64,000 nucleotides of DNA from Trichosphaerium sp. ATCC 40318 (lineage: Eukaryota; Protista; Tubulinea). Location: contig JALMLS010000287.1 in assembly GCA_038496445.1 (NCBI GenBank), forward strand, positions 152,347 through 216,346, given 5' to 3'. The translations under genes were made by a program, and so were the position numbers. Positions 14,611 to 28,076 of the stretch are shown here, piece by piece; position 1 is the first letter of the stretch; the number at the start of each line of letters is the position of its first letter. The notes below the pieces were generated by a model, which had not been told where the DNA came from, searched no databases, and worked only from the letters and a program-made list of their open reading frames with translations.

Positions 14611-17600
14611 TTACTTAAACCAAACGAATATATCTGGGTAATCATCAATATCTTCACCAGTCTTAACATCCTCGGCAGTAACCTCAACATTAAAGTAGCG
14701 TTGATTCTCCTTTAGTGTTATCTTAGCAATCTCAGGAACCAGCTCAGACAACCTTATTGCAATAAGCAACATAAAAAAAACAAAGAAAGAAAAAAAATAA
14801 TCAATGCTTACTTTCTTGGTAGTCTAGCTGCACCCTTCCTGCCAAAGCATGTGTAAATCAATGCAGTACCTACACCAACCATTTGGGCATCCATTTGATA
14901 TTTTTTCTAAAGCAAGTGTTAAACGTCAAACTCAATAAAAACCAAGTATTCAAAAAAATAAAAAACATACCTTGAGATAATTAAGGAACTGTTTCAAGGT
15001 TATATCACCTTGCTTGATATCAATGCGATCCCATAAGGTATAATGAGAGTCACGGAACTTGAGCTTCTCAGGAGCCAAAGGTTCAGATTGTTGGAAGACA
15101 GGTAATGCCAAATTGACAAAAGAGTTTCTGTATTGAAAGATTGTTTTATCTCCATGGAATAACTAAAAGAACCCTTCGTTAACACATCATTTCTTATACT
15201 GAGACTTACTTTATAGAACTCTAAGCATACTAAACCAGTAACCAAAGCTGTAGTAGTAATCATAGCTGGCATGATACGACCAGCAATAAGCTTGGATTGC
15301 AATTGTGTTACCTTTTTTTAACAAAACAGTTAGAAACTAACTTGAAGCTTGGGAGGTTATAAAGTGCATGATGCACGTAAAATTATACGTACAGGTTTGA
15401 TACCATAAGCAATTGCACGAAGATTAGAGGCAGCATGAATAAAATCGATGTGGAAGTTCGTGTCATCATCTTTTTCGAAATCGACTGGGTTAGTTCTGTA
15501 CGTTGTTGAAGCTGGGTCAGGGAGCTCTTTCTCAATTCTAGCGATTTGTACATCATCGTCATCTGCAGCTTCTCTATATAGAGATTAAACGACGCTATTG
15601 CAACGCAAAAATAAAGAGTGTTGTACAAACTAGCATTGTAGTACACTCAAAAAGGGTTGACTTGGTGGTTTTTGCTATCTTTCAACGTACACTACTTTTT
15701 CAGTGACACTCTCGTCAGTTTCAATCTTTACACCAACTTTTGGTTTCCATGCAGGAACAGATACAGAAGCAGCAGCCTTTGCAATACTAGCAGCTTGAGA
15801 CTCAAAGTCTGAAGGCTTAAACTCAGAGGAAATGATGTTTAGCGTGTAAGCACGCAAGAAAGCTGCTGATACAACAAACTGAGCATGTATAGGATCATTA
15901 GGATCGAATTCTATTGCCTTTGGTGGTCTCTTTGAACCAGACCAGAAAGGTGCTAAGAAATTATTAAGTAAAATGAATAAACACGTGAAAATACACGTGA
16001 CACGTGACAGGGCAAAAAAAGTCCAAATATGTTTGTGATGTACGTACCACCATGTGAGTCAACGTAATCCAATGGGAAATTATACAAGAGTTGTTTATGG
16101 TTCCAGTTGAATCTTTTTTGGAATTCGAGTCTAGCCCAAGCGATACAATCTTGGAACTCTAATTGACGCTCCATTAAGCAATCTTTGATGATTTTCAAGG
16201 TAGGTAACTTGAGATTTGGGCTCACAGTCTTTAACAAAAAGTCAAAATTTGGTTGGTTAAAAAAAAGGCAACTCACAGAAAGGTATCCAGGTTGCTCCAA
16301 GTAAGAGTTTGTGATGTCTGGATTCTTTACGAAGTGTCCTTCAAAGCAATCCTCCCTGCAAAAAAGTTAACTACTCACTCCTTTCCGTAAAGAGTGCAAA
16401 TTTTCGAGTGGAAAAAAAAGTACCTAGCCCATTGCAAGCAATGTTCAATGTTGTTTGGGAAGGAGTGTAATAAGCAAATAGGTGTCTCCTTTGCTGGTGG
16501 ATCAGTCGAAGATCCGTACGACTCTGTGAGATATGGTACAATAACTTGTACATTACCCTTGGATCCAAGTGTACCGGAATCGACAAGTGGCTTTCTACAG
16601 GGTGAATAAGTATTTTGAAACATAAAAATAGGTTTTCTACGATTATTGCGTACCTGAAGAATACACATCGCCTGTCAATATAGAGACGAGCTTGTACGTT
16701 ATCTACAGCATTGGCAACACCGTCGAGTTTCTCCCAAAACTCATCATGAAAGACATTTTCAGTCGAAGGTGCAACCTTTGTAGCAAGCGCTTCAATGTTC
16801 AATTCAGGGTTCATCTTCTTAACAGCAGCACAAGCTGTATTCGATTTCAATTTCTAGCACATGTATAAGCACACACAACCGATTAAAAAATAATCATTCT
16901 AAGCTTACTGTTACATCCCAACTGCGGTACAAGAACTGTCTGTTCAAGTTGGAAATTTCAATAGTGTCCATATCAGTAACTGTTACTTTTCCTTTCGGAC
17001 CTTGAGCCTTGTTAGTAACCACTACAACATAATACCAAGTATGATAGTGAACGCACCACAACCAATACCCATCATTGCAAAGTTCTTAAGCATCTCACAA
17101 CCAATTGCACCAGCACCAACTACAAAGTAGTTCAAGTTTAAGATTTTTTGGTTATACTCATTTCCGAAAACAGCTATTTGACCGTCGTAGCGTGTGTTAC
17201 GCTAGAAATATCAGTAACGGTAAATGCGTGTTTAAACATACTGGTTTAGCGTCTTCCTCAGTGATATCTTCAGTAGGGAGGCACTCGAGGTTTTCAGAGA
17301 ACAAAAATTGGTTGATAGGTGTAAACTTATTTGTAGTAGCTTTGAGAACTTCTTGGGCTACAATACCACCAATAGATGCGGCCATTGGGTTCAAAGAACC
17401 TGCAGCAGTTTTTGCAAGATCCATGACAACCTTTGACAAAGACCTTTTAGTCTCACCATCAGCCTAAACAATCACATTAGTAACCATGCGTTGCACCAAA
17501 AATAGTTGAAGGAAAAGAATACTGTATAAACCACGCACCACTGGAGATTCAGTAAAGTCCTTGTCAGTATAACGCTCATCTTCTGGGAGAGCTTCATTCA

Positions 17601-19174
17601 TTTTTTTTACTCTAGCTAGAATATCTTCAGCATCGCTCTACTTCTAGTTAATAAAACGCATCACTTCCATAGTATGGTACATAGTTTTGTTGTATAAAAA
17701 AAAAACTAACCTTGTTGTGTGGAGTAGGTAAGCGACCATTTTCTTGTCTGAAAGCAAGAAGACTCTGTAAAAACATAAAGTAAAGTGTGGATCTATTGAA
17801 CTTGGACCAATCTCCAATTTGAAGCTTTTCCATGGACAATTTCTTTCCCAAGAAACTAGCCAATGAATCCTAAATAAATACATCAATATACGTACTCTTG
17901 TACTACAAGTAAAACGTACGAAAGAGGCTTCAACAGGTTTCTTTACTTGCACCATATATCCACCTTTGGAATACTCGGAGAATGCGGATGTATCACCAAT
18001 AACTAATTGTGACGGTCCTTTTACAGTAACTTTAAATTCTTTGCCGTTGATTTCTTCCATTCCTTCGACTTCTGTGATACGGATGTAATCACCATCTTCA
18101 AGATCATGTCTAACACCTTCAACAATGGTAATAATAGCCTCTTTTTCCTAAAACGCATAGAGGTTAGAAGTAGATCATATTAGTGAACAAAACGTTGATT
18201 TTTCAATGAAAGAAAAGAGCCAAGACAGTGACGTGTACCTTTGTAATGTGAGACAAAAATGACGTTTTTGGTCTCTCACCATCCTTGTCTTTGATTATAT
18301 GGGCGTCTTTACCCATATCAACAAAAGTATAGGCAAATAAACCAAGTGTATCAGCAGTAATGAATTTAACATTGCTTTCACGACACATAGTGTTGTATTG
18401 AACCAAGCTGTCAAATGAGCTATTGTTAGTGAAGATAACAACCTGTAATATGTTAGTGGGGCATTTTGGAACAATTACAAGGGATAACAAGCGTTTAAAC
18501 AATTTTGTTATAAAAGCAGAGTCTTTACTAGCAATAAAACGCTGAAAATAACACTCTACGCACCGAGAATTTCTCTACAAACTCCTTATTAACCTCTCCG
18601 TCGAATATGTCGAGTTTTACGCGTTCGTTTAATTCACGCAATTTGAGTAGAACTGATTGCGCTCTGTTTTTGCCAACGTCTGCCTCAGACAAGTAAAACT
18701 AAACAAACGTTAATAAAACATTGTTTTTAATACGTTGAAATGTCATCATACGTTGGTGCTCAAGTCTGACATCTCTACAGGCTCGAGATCCTGAATTGTA
18801 AGCGATGATACGCCCATCAGTACAAGGTTCTTTGCTACGCCCCAAAGTTAATATAAATATCCTAAAACGCGTTGGCTAATATCTCCGCGTACCTATTTCC
18901 ATACCAAGGCCCCTTAAACCGACTAAGAAGATCCGTGAGCGTTCAAGCTGTTTTAGCGTCTCTACGCCATCCTCGCCAAGAGCGTGGAGTAGTCTGCTTG
19001 CTCTAGCCTCCCATGCCTTTTGACTTTCAACTTCCTGCAATGCCTGGTGTTAGTATATAAATGCTCTACGCTTATGCGTACTTCTACGGACATGTTATCT
19101 ATGTTGTCTGTCACTGTTTCAGTGGGGTGACTTATCTTTTGTCTTTTTTTTGGCGGCTCTTGAGGGCTTTGCAT
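14611..19174 (-). CDS. UBA1: Ubiquitin-activating enzyme E1, multi-exon
   Basis: [14 protein letters not shown]; [15 protein letters not shown]; [15 protein letters not shown]; [16 protein letters not shown]; catalytic PICLLHSFP; [13 protein letters not shown]; [16 protein letters not shown]. Confidence 0.93.
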
Positions 19175-20687: not shown

Positions 20688-20850
20688 GATTAGCATTGTA
20701 CCAAGAATAAAAACATGAAAAGTGCACAAAACGCAATTATTTTGGATCCATTGAAAGGCAGCAACAAACATTCGTTGGTGTCTATACCAACAGTTAAAAC
20801 CATTACTTTATTGTGAAGATGTTACAACGTAAGCGAACACAAAGAACAGT

Positions 20851-21790
20851 TTATTTAAGTTTAACACCATCCTTAAAGATTGCCTCAGCAATCACGTTAT
20901 ATTGTTTATCCCATTCCTTGTACTCTCCATCAATTTTACCATTTGTAAATTTACAACATTTAATGAGGATTCTATTGCCTTCACTATCGCTACACCATTC
21001 TTTTAATACCCCATGGATCTTACCATTCATATATTGCTTTTGATGTATTAAACCAGCATTGTACTTGAACTTTGTGTTTTCTTGTAATATTCCGTTTTTG
21101 TAAATACCTTCCTCAGTAATCATGCTTCGTAAATTCCAGAGTTTATACGGCCCATCTAGTTTGCCATTTTTGTATGTTTTTTCATACCGCTTTACATAGG
21201 ATTCCAACAAGCGCGATTTTCCGTCCAAAAAACCATTTTTGTAATTGTCAACTTTTTGAAATTCTATCCTGCCATTTGCATAGTTCTTTCTCGTCTCCTT
21301 CGCTGTACCATCAAGAAGGCCATTGACAAACTTACATTGATATGTTATCCATCCATCTCGGTGGTAATGAACATAGTCACCATGGAGTTTACCGTCTTCA
21401 TTGTAATTACATACAATCTTGACACCATGAGTGTCTTTATTTGTGTAATACACTTTGTTTTTTCCGAACTTTTTTCCTTCTTTGTAAGACAACTGCAAGC
21501 ATAATCCCCAGTAATGAGTGGCATGGAAAATAATGTTGACATTTCCATCAAGCTTGCCATGTTTGTATTGGGCTGTAACATTGTAACCGGCAGTTGCAAT
21601 CCAATCTTTGTTTCTGCGTGTAGAACAGTAGACCTGAATTTTAAACTTACCATGCTTTTGCAGTTTATTATCAAATCTAGATGTTGTCGCTGATTTCAAA
21701 CAAAGCTCAGGCCATAGCTTTTTTACTTCAACATCTGTATCAGAAAAGAGCATATGAACCTCAACAGGGAGATCCAAGAGCGTCATTTTA
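20851..21790 (-). CDS. F-box-like + MORN-variant repeat exon; likely 3' exon of a vault-repeat fusion gene
   Basis: LLDLPVEV F-box-like start; repeated Y..GKL(H/D)G.Y..W/Y MORN-variant units; no internal introns; AG acceptor at 21791. Confidence 0.85.
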
Positions 21791-21831
21791 CTAAAAAATC
21801 CTTTAGAGAACAAAGCCTACCTGCTTACTCA

Positions 21832-22647
21832 TCACGTGTACCTAACAGGTATACAGTCTAGATCTACAACATCTTGTACTCTTACATATGGAAGTGGTAT
21901 ATAGCGTCCGGGACCTTCAAACAACCACTATCATAACGAAAAACTAATAAGTAAATCGATACAAAGGTAAAATTAAACGCATTCAATCCTCACCTCATCT
22001 CCTTCTTTTCTGGAACACGAACCAATAGTAAAATCCTTCAAACATTGTAACTTAAGAGCCTTTCCTTTTTCTACAATTTGCAAGGGTGTAACGTCCACTT
22101 TAAGAACCTCTCCTTCGGACACAGTCAACGTTAATATTACTATAAATAGTTGTCATGGTTTCAGACAGCCACGCACCTGGGTAGAGTGGAAAGGGGTCTT
22201 GTGAGTAGCGAACCTCTTCCTCACCTTTTCTTAGACAAAATGACCCAGACATTGATTTCTTTAGTTGTGTTGGTGTAGGAATACGGGGAACGCAATTCAA
22301 GTCTCGGAATAGGTTCGCGTTTTCAACATTTCTAGTTAAGTAGCACACCTTTTCAAGCGCAACTTGAAAGTCCACTCTGTTTTGCGAATGATGTACTTTT
22401 ATGATTTCTGTAACTACTGGGTTCTCAATGATGCAGTAGTGATCTTTGGGTATTTTAATCATTTGTTTAGGGCCACAAAGTAATTCGGTGTCCGCAGTTA
22501 ACGTAATAGTCTTTGGTCCTATTTCTAGGCGTGGTATACGACTTTACAAGCGTTAGAGCTGTTTTTAGTAGTTGTCACGTACTAGCGTTTGTGTGCGACG
22601 AAAGCGTACTGAAATTCGGCTAGTATAACCTCCGTAAGCCCAGACAT
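21832..22647 (-). CDS. Major vault protein-like N-terminal repeats (about R1-R3), multi-exon; truncated or fused to downstream MORN exon
   Basis: RLEIGPKT..PKQMIKIPKDHYCIIENPV; EVRYSQDPFPLYPG|EVL..VTPLQIV..ALKL; EGDE|WLFEGPGRYIP match MVP repeats; no shoulder or cap domains. Confidence 0.88.
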
Positions 22648-22896: not shown

Positions 22897-23924
22897 TTAC
22901 TCAACTCTTTCGCCAGAGTTGTATTGATAGTCAATAGATAAGACATGTTTACCATCAATCTTCTTCCATACTCTCCATTGACCATGCTTCTTACCTTTTA
23001 AATAATGACCGTGAACTTTTGGTTTACCATCATTAAACCAAGCACGATAAGATCCATCAAACTTACCATTGTAGTAACTACATTCTCTTACAACTTGTGA
23101 AAACTTGAACATTTTCGAAACACCACTTAACTTCCCTTTAGCATAATTATGCTCCCACAATAATGATCCATTTCTTCTATATCCACTATGAACACCTTCT
23201 TTCATACCATTCGTAAAAACTCTATGTACCATAACAACACCATCTGCATTCCATTTGAAATGCTCTCCTACTTTTTTCCCATTTTCGTAATTTCCTTGTA
23301 CTAGAACACCCCTAGTCTCTATGTGATACCTTCTCATTGTACCATGCAATTTACCATTAACAAATGTTGCTGTTAAGTTTGGACGATTATTATAGAAACG
23401 TTCTATATACTCACCATCCACGTGATCAGGAAATTTGCTTGTATTGTAGTGAATCATTGTGCGTTTAATTAGACTATCAAGCATTCCTTTTCTGTTATTT
23501 TTTCTAAAGTAGCATTGAATGGGATGCCATTTTGCTCCAACACGAACATTAAACTCACCAATAAGTGTCCATTATCAAAAGTACACTCCACTCTCTCTAT
23601 GTTATAAGCGCGTGATTTTGAGCGCCTGTAATAACTTGAATGAAGTTCGCCATTTGCATACGAACACTTTAAAAGTACGTTGCCTTGTATGTCCCACGTT
23701 GTGTATGGTCCATTCAAAATATCGTTGTCAACGTGAAAAATGGTTTTAAGTGCCTTGGGGTTGTAATACCTCTCAAATTTACCCATTCGCTTCAAGTCTG
23801 TTGTGTATCTTGTTGAAATAGCTTCTTCCTTTGAGAGTATTGGCCAAATACAACGTACGCGCGGATCGATGGCTGTTATCATATGTTTAAGCTCTCTGGG
23901 TAATGTAGCCAGCGACGCCGTCAT
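22897..23924 (-). pseudogene. F-box-like + MORN-variant repeat gene with one frameshift (or sequencing error)
   Basis: N-terminus LATLPRELKHM..WP.L..STRY..GKF is paralogous to the 21786 N-terminus; frame shifts near 23562 (DNGHL to IGEFNV) and continues into ORF 22897-23484. Confidence 0.75.
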
Positions 23925-24361: not shown

Positions 24362-27300
24362 TTAAAACTCCCAAGTTATTCTTGTTTGCTTCTCTCCCTT
24401 TGCTTTTCTCTCCCTTGGTTCAGCTAAACAGAAACGTAAGTGTCAAGACGAAATATACTTTGAGCGTACGTAGAGGTTCTTCTCTGTGGTAATCAAACGG
24501 TTTTACAGGTGATGTATCTTCTTCTTGTTCTTCTTGTGGTTTTTCTTTCTTTTGTCTTTTCTTTTTCGATGGTTTTTTACGTTTCTGGCGCTTAGCAGCT
24601 TTTTTAGATAATAGAGAATCTTCTCTTTTCTTTTCTTCCCTTGTCATTAACCCAAGGTTCTTCATAAACGCAACACTTTGCTCAAAAGCATCTAGTCAAG
24701 TGAGTCAGAAATGTATTCAAAAAACAAAGGTTGGCTATGATAAACGTACCAGTGTGAGACTCTTTAGCCTTCTTTAGCGCTGGAGCAGCTTCTGATTCCA
24801 TGTTCCTTTCCGATATATGAGTGGGAGTGATGGAATGACGAAAGACGTACTGGCTAGCGTGTGCTTCAGCTTTTCGTTTTTTGTCTCTGAGAACCTGTTT
24901 TCTTGACTTCCTTTGTTGCTCAAGCATCCATACATCTCCAGTCTCATCGTAGGCATCTTGTAGTGATGGTGGTAACTTGTTCGAAGAATCTGCGTATGTT
25001 TGCTCCTTGAGGGCCATCGACTTGTCGAGATCAAGTACAAGAGTATTTGGTTTTGCAAATTTGTTCTAATTATTATTTAGCTCCATTGAATAACACCATA
25101 TCTCAAATACGTACGTCACCACCAGTACTGTCAATATCCATAAACGTTGCTGGATCAGCCTAAGAAACTTTGGTAAGCATTTTATACAATAACCAAATAC
25201 TTTACCTTCACTGGTGTTAGCACTGATACATCCATGTCAGCGACTATAGCATTAGCATTACGTATAGCTTCTTCTTGCTCATAGTCGTCGCTGTTTGTTT
25301 GCTCTTCAACATCTCTAAATAGACCACCAGATAGTGGTCGTGATGTAATCATGTCCTTGTTTTCAATAGCAACGCCAATTTTTTTCTCTGTTGAGAATTA
25401 TTAGAACTATTTGATAGAAAGTAGGGCGTACTCTTGTACTTGAGAAGGTCTCTGTTAATGTTTGTTGCTGTTAGGTGTAGAGAAGAAGGTGCTGGAAAGT
25501 ATGTTTGTTGTTCTATTTCTTCTTGCTTAACCTCAACAAGAAGTTTGGGTTTGACTTCAACTTTCTAACAACAAAAGTTAGTCTTAGAAGTTTTCACAAC
25601 AATTTACCATTTCTACACGCCCAGCCAAGGCGTCTTTGATAATGAGTACCATCTCAAGTGCATGTACTCGTACTAATGGAGGTACAGGATTACAACAACC
25701 TAGTAATTTTACAGGACCGGTTGGTTTCATCTGATGGCATTTTTAGAATGTGAATTTTGGAGGTCGTAGTACCTTGGCTACACGGTTGAGCTGGTGGTTT
25801 GGTAACACGTAACGTGTGCTTTCGTCTTCAGTACGAGCAACACTAAAATTAGTAAGTATAATACAGGTTCTTTATATCCTGTACCGATCACGCCAAGCAT
25901 ATAAAGCGGCAAAGACACGCAACTAGTAATACGATTAGAATGTGATGTAATGATGACTGTCAGAGTACTTGTTCGTCTGTTAAGTCAAGGTTGTACTTAT
26001 TGTACAAGCCTCTGTAAGCATCTAATGTGAATGCTGGCTTCTCGTATCTTTGTAAGGATACTTCAGCACTTCGCTTTATAGTTGCAGAAAGCAAGTTATT
26101 CATCTCATTACTACGACTAATCAAATCATTTCGTATCCTACACAAATCAATATGTCAATAAAATTGTTGGCGTCTGAATGTCAGTTTACCTATCATGTAT
26201 GTATAGGAGGTAATGCGTATCTTCTCTTGCATATTTTTTCATCTCCTCAGGAAGAGGCCTTCACATAATATTAGATACTTACAATACTATACATTTCAGA
26301 TTGCAAAGCACGTACCTGATGCGCCAATCAGCAAGCTGATACTTTTTATCAGGTACAATATTACAGTAGTGTTTCAAAAGGAAAGCCAATGCAAAACTAG
26401 GAAAGCCTAGCACGCGACTGGCTTGACCAGTATCAAACAAGTTTACAATATAGATACCAAAATCCCTCTAAAAACCGCAAGTTTAGACATTGCTCATACA
26501 AGTTTGACGATTAAGTTGTACCTGAAGCCATAGTATGTCCATATCTGAACCGTGCAATACCTAAGAGAGGTTTAGGATGTGTTGTTAGAAGCAACATCAG
26601 CAAGATAAGAAAGGTTACCTTCAGAATACGTGGATTTGAAAATACTTCATTTAAAATACACATTTCTTTTCTAACTTTAATAGTGTCAACAAGAAAATCT
26701 TTTTCACGCGATGAAATCTGCATTAAACACGTGAAACCCTATAGTATTATTAGCATAACGTTGAATGTACTTAAGAAGCAATAATAACGCACTTGATACG
26801 ATCTGTAAGCGTGGTGTTCCTGAAATTAAGTCAGTAAAGGTTAAACATCAAAAAACCTCAAAATGTACCAAATCGACAGCGATCTCAGTTACTGTGTTGA
26901 GGTAATCTACCATATTTTGTAGTGACTGACTATCAGCTACCATATTAAGTTCAACTTCTTCCAATGACGCATAAAGGGTTGGCGCTGTTTGTTCGGCACT
27001 TTGAACATTGTATCGTTTTATAAATGTGTCAATTTCGACAGCATAAGGATGAGAATATGCCATGACAGCTTGCTCCTTTGGTTCACGCTGTACATTCACT
27101 GTATCGTATTTTAGTTTCAGTGCTAATTGTATGGTTAATCAGGATAATAATAAAAAACTAGGCGTGTGAAAAGAGAATCTTGTAAACCATCACTATCAAA
27201 ACACAAAAAAGTGACACTCTCGGAATGTTCCGTGTCTGACGTACATTCGTCTAAGCCAACGATAGCGTTTGGTTTAGTGGTTATAATAGGGATAAACGGG

Positions 27301-28076
27301 TGGTAAGAGTTGTTAATAGTATCTCGCCATTGCTCCTGTGGTCTCTCAATATTACTTCCATGGAATAAATAAAGGTCTAGCTTGCCCTAGTGCTGTTTAG
27401 AAGAAATAAAAATAATTGTAGCACGCGCTCTACAAAAAATTTCTGGGGTTGTAAATAGCGATAAAATACGTTTGATTTACGTAGAGGTACAAGAAGAGCT
27501 GTACCTTTTTCACTTTTGTTTTTTTAATTTTTATCTTTGTCATATCGCGGTTTCCTTGTACTTCATCCGCGTACGTATCCTACGCGTGTTTTAGTATTTT
27601 TTAACGTTGTCGTTTGAAGGTTTTTCTTTCAGCGGGTTTTCCTATTACGTTAACATGTGCCAGTTTTCTTGCGTACCACTTCTTCAATAAGCTCGTCTAT
27701 TACTTCAACGACGCTATCGAAGTTATCAATTACTTCGTCAGGATCGTCAAATGCGGTTAATTTAGGCACGTTCTCTGCAGAGGTAAAGTCCAAAAACCGT
27801 TGCATTAGGTTCAAGGACTGTTTATTTATCCCCTCCATTTTTGTTTTGTACTCTTCAAATGTTGAGCAATAACGGTGGTCTTCTTCATCTGGTAGCGTAT
27901 TCGATAGTTTTGTGGTTTCTATGAGCGTTTGGAAGACAGCCTGTGCAAACTTGTCGAGTTCTTGATGTAATGGGTTGAGAATTTCATAAGGAAGCTGTTT
28001 ACGCACCTAGGTACTCATCTAGGAACGGTAAGCCTCCTTCAGACAGGAGTTGATCCAATGTTTTATCTGACGCCAT
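24362..28076 (-). CDS. RRP6: Exosome-associated 3'-5' exonuclease RRP6/EXOSC10, multi-exon
   Basis: PMC2NT-like N-terminus; HPYAVEI; EIAVDL|[21 protein letters not shown]; NLFDTGQAS; ADWRIRPLPEEM; HRDC ([13 protein letters not shown]-like). Confidence 0.93.

Follow-up and report, generated by a model that had tools for sequence, protein, structure and literature searches.

Does the genome of the marine amoeba Trichosphaerium sp. ATCC 40318 encode a protein that joins vault repeats to MORN repeats, or do two separate genes stand very close together? The question arises in a 64,000-nt stretch of contig JALMLS010000287.1 (assembly GCA_038496445.1, positions 152,347 to 216,346; hereafter the window), where five short exons resembling the beginning of the major vault protein (MVP) are followed, after an interval of 51 nt, by a large exon that encodes MORN_2-type repeats. 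To our knowledge, vault repeats are found almost only inside MVP. We are somewhat inclined to read the locus as a chimeric gene, in which repeats R1-R3 of a diverged MVP paralog have been joined by exon shuffling to a protein of the LLxLPxE/MORN_2 family. Coordinates are those of the window, and all elements of the locus lie on the minus strand.

The MVP-like part, which we call mini-MVP, comprises five small exons between 22647 and 21842, with MVP-like stretches spread over three reading frames. A Vault_2 domain is recognized by Pfam at 22103-22543 (E 4.2e-14; 53 bits, cut-off 23.6), and a Vault domain at 21976-22128 falls just below its cut-off (E 1.2e-4; 22.4 bits, cut-off 27). The locus is also recovered among the Vault_2 matches of the whole genome. 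The exon model was built from alignments to the MVP paralogs of the Trichosphaerium genome, and homology searches of the gene model were made exon by exon. All five exons are open and together encode about 165 residues, which we take to be the length of R1-R3 in mammalian MVP, with repeat boundaries as in the rat vault structure. The initial annotation, made from the sequence before these searches, had proposed a module of about the first three MVP repeats. This estimate agrees with the domain matches and with the tblastn alignments at 22540-21850, which span some 165 codons. When all exon-like segments of six paralogs are used as tblastn queries, no MVP homology is found beyond 22540-21850 in the 64-kb window, and the C-terminal exons of the paralogs have no match anywhere in it, including downstream of the MORN gene. 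Because MVP homology is confined to this region, mini-MVP is truly cut off after R3.

The exon boundaries of mini-MVP largely follow those of its paralogs, which we designate by contig. An ATG at 22647-22645 opens the short exon 1 (22583..22647; 21 codons plus 2 nt), whose peptide aligns with that of the first exon of C56 and C42 (MS..VIRIKPYHYIHVLDNNK) and ends at the same intron position. Intron 1 (22542..22582; 41 nt, GTACGT...CTAAC..AAAG) accordingly sits where intron 1 of C56 and C42 does, and its donor scores at the 99.7th percentile. Exon 2 (22397..22541, with an alternative 3' end at 22349) lies within the Vault_2 match and encodes R1 and the start of R2; its blocks EIGPKT and HYCIIENPV are 45-58% identical to the paralogs. 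A probable intron 2 follows (22259..22396; 138 nt, or 90 nt when measured from a donor at 22348), which corresponds to residues missing in the aligned paralogs, and C42, C24 and C16 have an intron at this position. Since this intron is free of stops and a multiple of three in either form (138 or 90 nt), its retention is possible; a retained intron 2 would add 30-46 residues to R2 and keep the frame. The remainder of R2, up to ...RKGEEEVRYSQDPFPLYPG, is encoded by exon 3 (22177..22258), which contains the best Vault_2 stretch and is 62-70% identical to C16, C47 and C73. Intron 3 (22113..22176; 64 nt) interrupts the frame in phase 1 after YPG, at a position common to C56, C42, C73 and C47. Exon 4 (21994..22112) carries the first part of R3 (...TPLQIV...GDE) and yields the Vault match noted above. 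Intron 4 (21928..21993; 66 nt) follows GDE in phase 0 and is present also in C56 and C42, but not in C73. Finally, exon 5 (21842..21927; WLFEGPG...DCIPV plus AG) encodes the end of R3 and the first residues of R4, with 52-57% identity to the canonical paralogs.

Mini-MVP is homologous in R1-R3 to the MVP that forms the rat vault shell of 78 chains, through the blocks EIGPKT, HYCIIENPV, DPFPLYPG, PLQ(I/V)V and WLFEGPG, and it shares intron positions with the MVP genes of its own genome. However, MVP has about 850 residues, whereas mini-MVP has about 165 and lacks R4-R9, the shoulder and the cap helix. The absence of shoulder and cap helix had been recognized correctly for this locus in the initial annotation, which also proposed a search for a full-length MVP elsewhere in the genome. 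Three such canonical genes exist, on C73, C56 and C42, and these are the only places in the genome where the shoulder family PF11978 is matched. Because R4-R9, the shoulder and the cap helix are absent, the product of mini-MVP cannot build a vault shell.

Two shorter MVP-like genes, truncated to about 435 aa and lacking the shoulder, are present on C24 (L012, C24:393000-401000) and C47 (L014, C47:6000-14000). In Table S2 of the published genome description (PMC10521059), two models named 'major vault protein alpha, putative' are listed, TRSP19344 on scaffold 24 (435 aa) and TRSP26200 on scaffold 47 (438 aa). Like mini-MVP, the C24 and C47 genes have vault repeats without shoulder or cap, and in both the R3/R4 boundary is interrupted by an intron, near the donor of the 51-nt interval. 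With about eight repeats they are longer than mini-MVP, whose three repeats lie next to a MORN gene, and in their 8-kb loci no further domain is seen attached. A very diverged MVP copy with a charged, coiled-coil-like tail is located on C16 (L013, C16:184000-191000), outside the PF11978 matches.

Several features of mini-MVP bear on its age and on the constraint acting on it. Identity to any paralog is only 30-60%, and the copy is therefore old. Introns 1, 3 and 4 are placed as in the paralogs, so that mini-MVP arose by genomic duplication and not by retroposition, and the GT-AG ends of these three introns are intact. Mini-MVP keeps the invariant residue at 30 of 32 alignment columns that show no variation in at least four paralogs, and it carries the majority residue in 33 of 85 variable columns; these counts are somewhat circular, because the alignment was anchored on mini-MVP itself. 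The pattern speaks for purifying selection on mini-MVP through most of the history of the copy. As judged from sequence comparison, the five short exons are R1-R3 of an old, diverged MVP paralog that still looks constrained.

The large downstream exon, here called MORN B (20851..21790; 940 nt), ends with the TAA at 20853-20851 and contains an ATG of its own at 21786-21784, from which 311 aa are encoded. An AATAAA at 20807..20812, 38 nt past the stop, probably serves as poly(A) signal for the entire unit. MORN B consists of an N-terminal domain (21637..21780) and an array of MORN_2-type beta-hairpin repeats (20854..21651). PF07661 is matched only weakly by MORN B alone (E 0.31, Pfam), and the family consensus repeats the unit Y.NGK.EGE.K.W. 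In databases, its homologs are MORN_2 (PF07661, 'YwqK-like') proteins from bacteria, from metagenomes and from giant viruses, Orpheovirus among them. Most of 105 such homologs (176-560 aa) carry PF07661, and a Vault domain was found in none of the 105. An AlphaFold model based on 17 paralogs has a mean predicted local distance difference test (pLDDT) score of 86, with the repeats mostly above 90. Its best Foldseek matches in the PDB are MORN1 of Toxoplasma, Plasmodium and Trypanosoma and junctophilin-1/2 (E 5e-7 to 4e-6). In the model, then, the MORN exon has an elongated antiparallel beta-sheet fold like that of solved MORN arrays.

In its motif, repeat array and size (~311 aa), MORN B is a typical member of the LLxLPxE plus MORN_2 family, which occurs in amoebae and giant viruses and has more than 210 matches, from 1675 first-look candidates, in this genome. 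A motif search of 30 family loci yielded 25 main-exon frames, in 17 of which the frame lacks an ATG upstream of the motif and is open for only 2-12 codons ahead of LLxLP. After removal of one duplicate, 16 frames were modeled, and 15 of these fit a mini exon 1 followed by a short intron. In the preferred models, mini exon 1 consists of an ATG and 0-17 further codons, and the 13 introns, 38-55 nt long, end 2-12 codons before the LLxLP motif. The donor sequences include GTAAGT, GTACGG, GTACGT, GTGCGT and GTATGT, and the acceptors are mostly TAG, often with CTAAC ahead. Most genes of the family are not intronless (L016-L044, for example L018, L020, L025 and L041).

The two parts of the locus meet at a candidate junction intron of 51 nt in phase 2 (21791..21841; GTACAC...CTAAAGGATTTTTTAG). 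Exon 5 ends with ...CCT GTT AG at 21842, GTACAC follows, and the interval terminates in TTTTTTAG. When it is spliced out, AG and T form a serine codon, and the frame continues as K-M-T-L-L-D-L-P-V-E into the 940-nt exon. When it is retained, translation adds R-Y-T and stops at the TGA at 21834-21832, which lies inside the interval together with a CACGTG at 21838-21833. The initial annotation had described the boundary ...DCIPV-AG|GTACAC at 21842, a GT-AG interval at 21841-21791 that joins the two parts in frame, and a stop three codons later in the unspliced form; all of these are found at exactly those positions. It had also called 51 nt a normal size for an intron here, and this is borne out by the local range of 38-66 nt, to which the 13 MORN-family first introns (38-55 nt) and the homology-supported introns of mini-MVP (41, 64 and 66 nt) contribute.

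Besides its GT-AG ends, the interval has a branch-like CTAA and a run of T ahead of the AG. Splice sites were scored with a small position matrix made from 15 inferred family first introns of other loci. Among all GT in the window, the donor at 21841 reaches the 89th percentile, and among all AG the acceptor at 21791 reaches the 91st; neither score leaves the range that the training introns span under leave-one-out. The interval offers seven GT-AG pairs that are in frame and free of stops, of which only 21841/21791 has two good sites. An in-frame join is expected by chance in one of three cases. Taken on sequence alone, the junction sites rank above chance, but not by much.

The positions of the two sites can be compared with the introns of both parental families. 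The canonical MVP genes on C73, C56 and C42 have no intron at the point of the junction donor. In the three diverged paralogs, a short intron is present within 2-6 codons of it. In C47 and C24, a phase-1 intron is placed approximately four codons downstream of the 21841 donor by one protein alignment and approximately two codons downstream by another, and C16 has an intron about two codons upstream. Over its first 15 nt, the interval agrees with the C47 intron in 11 positions, compared with 4-7 for 14 other introns. These comparisons make a modest case that the GT at 21841 descends from an MVP-family donor. On the other side, the acceptor at 21791 lies four codons ahead of the LLxLP motif. Because introns of the MORN family end 2-12 codons before this motif, the acceptor is at the conserved intron position of that family.

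If the five MVP exons and the MORN exon form one transcription unit, it would encode a chimeric protein of about 478 residues, with the 51-nt phase-2 intron splicing the vault-repeat exons to the single large MORN_2 exon. Its origin would be a rearrangement at the DNA level, by exon shuffling, with the breakpoint inside introns. The donor would derive from the R3/R4-boundary intron of the diverged MVP paralogs and the acceptor from the conserved MORN-family first intron, so that the interval would be a hybrid of the two, as intron recombination would leave. The ATG of the MORN exon may in addition provide a second start, giving a stand-alone MORN protein. Chimeric genes created by intron recombination are known from textbook cases such as jingwei in Drosophila. 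As in those exon-shuffled chimeras, 5' exons of one gene precede the main exon of another, and the intron junction lies near the intron positions of the parents. Unlike in the textbook cases, shuffling at mini-MVP and MORN B is read from anatomy alone.

A number of observations weigh against a chimeric gene. No large N-terminal domain precedes the motif in the other family loci examined, and no other examined family member has a folded domain there. In MORN B, the motif is preceded at a distance of two codons by an ATG in an AAAATG context. The tandem family member upstream of it, MORN A, starts with MT at the same place and has a possible acceptor 8 nt upstream; this shared start implies that the common ancestor probably initiated there, with the intron in its 5' untranslated region (UTR). 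The first intron of the family is in phase 0 in nearly all members, whereas the junction is in phase 2, and the open frame across the junction can therefore not have been inherited but reflects either selection or a one-in-three chance. The similarity of the interval to the C47 intron is modest over the full length, with a score of 10 versus at most 8 for unrelated introns. The interval also contains CACGTG, a possible promoter mark. Taken together with the points in its favor, the gene model of the initial annotation stands as plausible, given typical splice sites, an acceptor at the family position, paralog introns nearby and a gap of 46 nt, and is weakened by the ATG that the MORN exon has of its own.

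An appreciable though clearly minor chance goes to two separate genes, namely a mini-MVP of 168 residues (R1-R3 plus R-Y-T) that ends at the TGA at 21832 and a MORN gene that starts at the ATG at 21786. Transcription of the MORN gene would then begin inside or just past the last mini-MVP exon, and the GT-AG pair would be unused or would bound an intron in the 5' UTR. Such an arrangement is in line with the AAAATG start of the MORN exon, which is shared with MORN A and several family members that have an in-exon ATG, and with the existence of stand-alone truncated MVP-like genes (C24 and C47; 435 and 438 aa). The spacing argues otherwise. Only 46 nt separate the read-through stop from the MORN ATG, whereas gaps between same-strand neighbors, estimated from the ends of open reading frames (ORFs) in three pairs (MORN A to mini-MVP and the tandem pairs in L020 and L041), are about 250-460 nt. 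Since 46 nt is too short to hold a 3' end as well as a promoter and a 5' UTR, the spacing supports one transcription unit. No AATAAA occurs within 160 nt past the mini-MVP stop, in comparison with 61 nt for MORN A and 38 nt for MORN B; this is weak evidence, because only 10 of 23 family genes have an AATAAA within 100 nt of the stop (background 9.5%). A CACGTG stands 47 nt upstream of the MORN ATG, and by eye the same motif is seen 32-50 nt upstream of some family members; it occurs upstream of most members looked at. However, CACGTG is enriched across the window, with 37 sites versus 10.7 +/- 3.5 in shuffles (3.4-fold; for example at 21833, 22878 and 24179), and is not specific to promoters. 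We therefore dropped it as a mark of a MORN promoter, as it decides nothing. Two genes would also leave both splice sites, which look functional and lie at or near ancestral intron positions, to be explained.

We consider it rather improbable that the MVP piece is a stranded remnant of a longer paralog, which encodes no functional protein, serves at most as a leader or promoter, and has a frame that has not yet decayed. The copy is indeed cut off immediately after R3, with no R4-to-cap homology in the window, and the unusual in-frame insert or intron of 90-138 nt between exons 2 and 3 would suit a decaying gene. Duplication followed by decay also takes place in this genome, as seen in family members with internal stops. 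Yet a remnant this old (30-60% identity) would hardly be expected to retain about 165 codons without a stop, every inferred splice site in working form and 30 of 32 invariant positions, in addition to the start codon and the homology to exon 1 of the paralogs. An operon-like pair, in which the MORN message receives a spliced leader by trans-splicing at the TTTTTTAG acceptor and is translated from its own ATG, strikes us as highly improbable. There is a strong acceptor 4 nt upstream of the ATG and 46 nt past the upstream stop, and this placement of an acceptor near an ATG resembles trans-spliced operons of other eukaryotes. Against this, family members without an in-exon ATG have cis mini-exons that supply an ATG and GT donors, and on these grounds the spliced-leader reading was rejected; nothing in the genome points to a spliced leader, and we know of no spliced-leader trans-splicing in Amoebozoa. 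Rejected likewise was a MORN gene nested in an MVP intron with hidden downstream exons, because there is no MVP homology elsewhere in the window.

The N-terminal domain of MORN B, described in the initial annotation as F-box-like, could not be confirmed as an F-box. It has about 48 residues with the consensus LLxLPxELxLxIIDLD..Y..WPLLSK..ATTTRFD..L.KHGKW, and P, E, L and R are invariant in an alignment of 23 members (LLxLPxE...WPLLSK...TTRFD...KHGKW). F-box profile hidden Markov models (PF00646, PF12937 and relatives) match none of the 23 family N-termini at E<=1, and a PDB profile search with the family N-terminus returns no F-box chain. When the family N-termini are compared by hhalign with 19 F-box-like domains of the same genome, the LPxE motif falls in register over 42 columns, at a weak probability of 5% (P 0.0076). 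The AlphaFold2 pLDDT of the domain, 47-63, is too low for a comparison of folds. A search of the ESM Atlas with the 147-aa unspliced exon frame found only unrelated clusters, with scores <=0.82, and was uninformative. A Skp1 gene is present on C137, in the region of 79,701-79,844, and a predicted complex of the C-terminal exon of Skp1 (L065:1492-1665:-) with the family N-terminal domain scores 0.02, which weighs neither way. As a lead, the domain may be a very diverged F-box. The genome has a large F-box repertoire separate from the MORN family: PF12937 gives 1809 first-look candidates genome-wide, and the 150 of them that were scored all exceed the Pfam cut-off.

According to the published account, F-box and MORN are the commonest 'giant-virus-derived' domains of Trichosphaerium, and 'F-box and MORN' genes are called virus-derived (PMC10521059). 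The same source gives 70.87 Mb and a GC content of 37.7% for the draft genome and names PRJNA833396 as the accession of the deposited RNA-seq data (PMC10521059, Tekle et al. 2023).

The published gene models offer a further view of the locus. TRSP identifiers rise along scaffold 101, on which the window is C101:152347-216346, so that models can be assigned by order. Anchors are provided by TRSP32586 (RasGEF, 6.7-10.4 kb of the window), TRSP32587 (SMYD, ~12-14.3 kb), TRSP32592 (an 848-aa, Rrp6-like 3'-5' exonuclease with a lysine-rich tail and many short introns, 24420-28006 on the minus strand, adjoining MORN A) and TRSP32602 (gamma-glutamyltransferase, 45.6-47.2 kb). A ubiquitin-activating enzyme E1 gene on the minus strand at 14900-19174, with ThiF and E1_FCCH matches and many short introns, must use one identifier. 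TRSP32589 is listed as a 325-aa protein with an Acanthamoeba match (PMC10521059). It is not the MORN exon, because the MORN frame has 311 aa and no upstream ATG exon fits, and its position excludes MORN A; it would then correspond to a run of ORFs at 19.3-20.7 kb, although Pfam finds no match in the ORF pieces at 19.1-20.7 kb. Two identifiers, TRSP32590 and TRSP32591, are thereby left for the three units MORN B, mini-MVP and MORN A. As far as this order-based assignment goes, it hints indirectly that the published annotation, which was guided by transcripts and proteins, merges mini-MVP with the MORN exon; a merged model would itself be a prediction, not a proof.

MORN A (22897..23924, minus strand) has its own ATG, and its AATAAA lies 61 nt past its stop. 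It consists of two overlapping frames, 23924-23469 and 23484-22897, with a GTGAGT after ...GHLL at approximately 23557. No acceptor that restores the frame cleanly was found in MORN A, where a frameshift or an intron of some 50 nt may be present. Elsewhere in the genome, the family members on the contig pairs C194/C245, C116/C302, C68/C344 and C464/C619 have the same scores and coordinate offsets within each pair; these contigs are probably haplotigs, or else segmental duplicates of very recent origin.

What might a chimeric product do? It could be imagined as a soluble adaptor, in which a vault-repeat beta-sheet module is followed by a helical domain of about 45 residues, possibly F-box-like, and by the MORN beta-hairpin array. 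The initial annotation had suggested docking on vaults and a link to SCF-type ubiquitination, which we regard as speculation. In its fullest form, this proposal would make R1-R3 a portable module that docks on the N-terminal waist of the vault or on free MVP and brings with it the MORN array and a cryptic, F-box-like Skp1-binding domain, as an adaptor for the turnover, opening or anchoring of vaults. We consider this specific role very unlikely.

The significance of the locus depends on which reading is correct. Were mini-MVP and MORN B separate genes, the result would be a stand-alone mini-MVP of 168 residues, which is unusual but of lesser interest, since truncated MVP-like genes of 435-438 aa already exist in this genome. 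A fused protein, if real, would be a new combination of domains made from known parts and a clear-cut case of exon shuffling in an amoeba, in a genome that is crowded with repeat-protein families of fast turnover. The function of vaults is still unsettled. If the fusion is true, this natural reuse of R1-R3, the repeats that form the waist of the vault, would give a handle on what these repeats bind.

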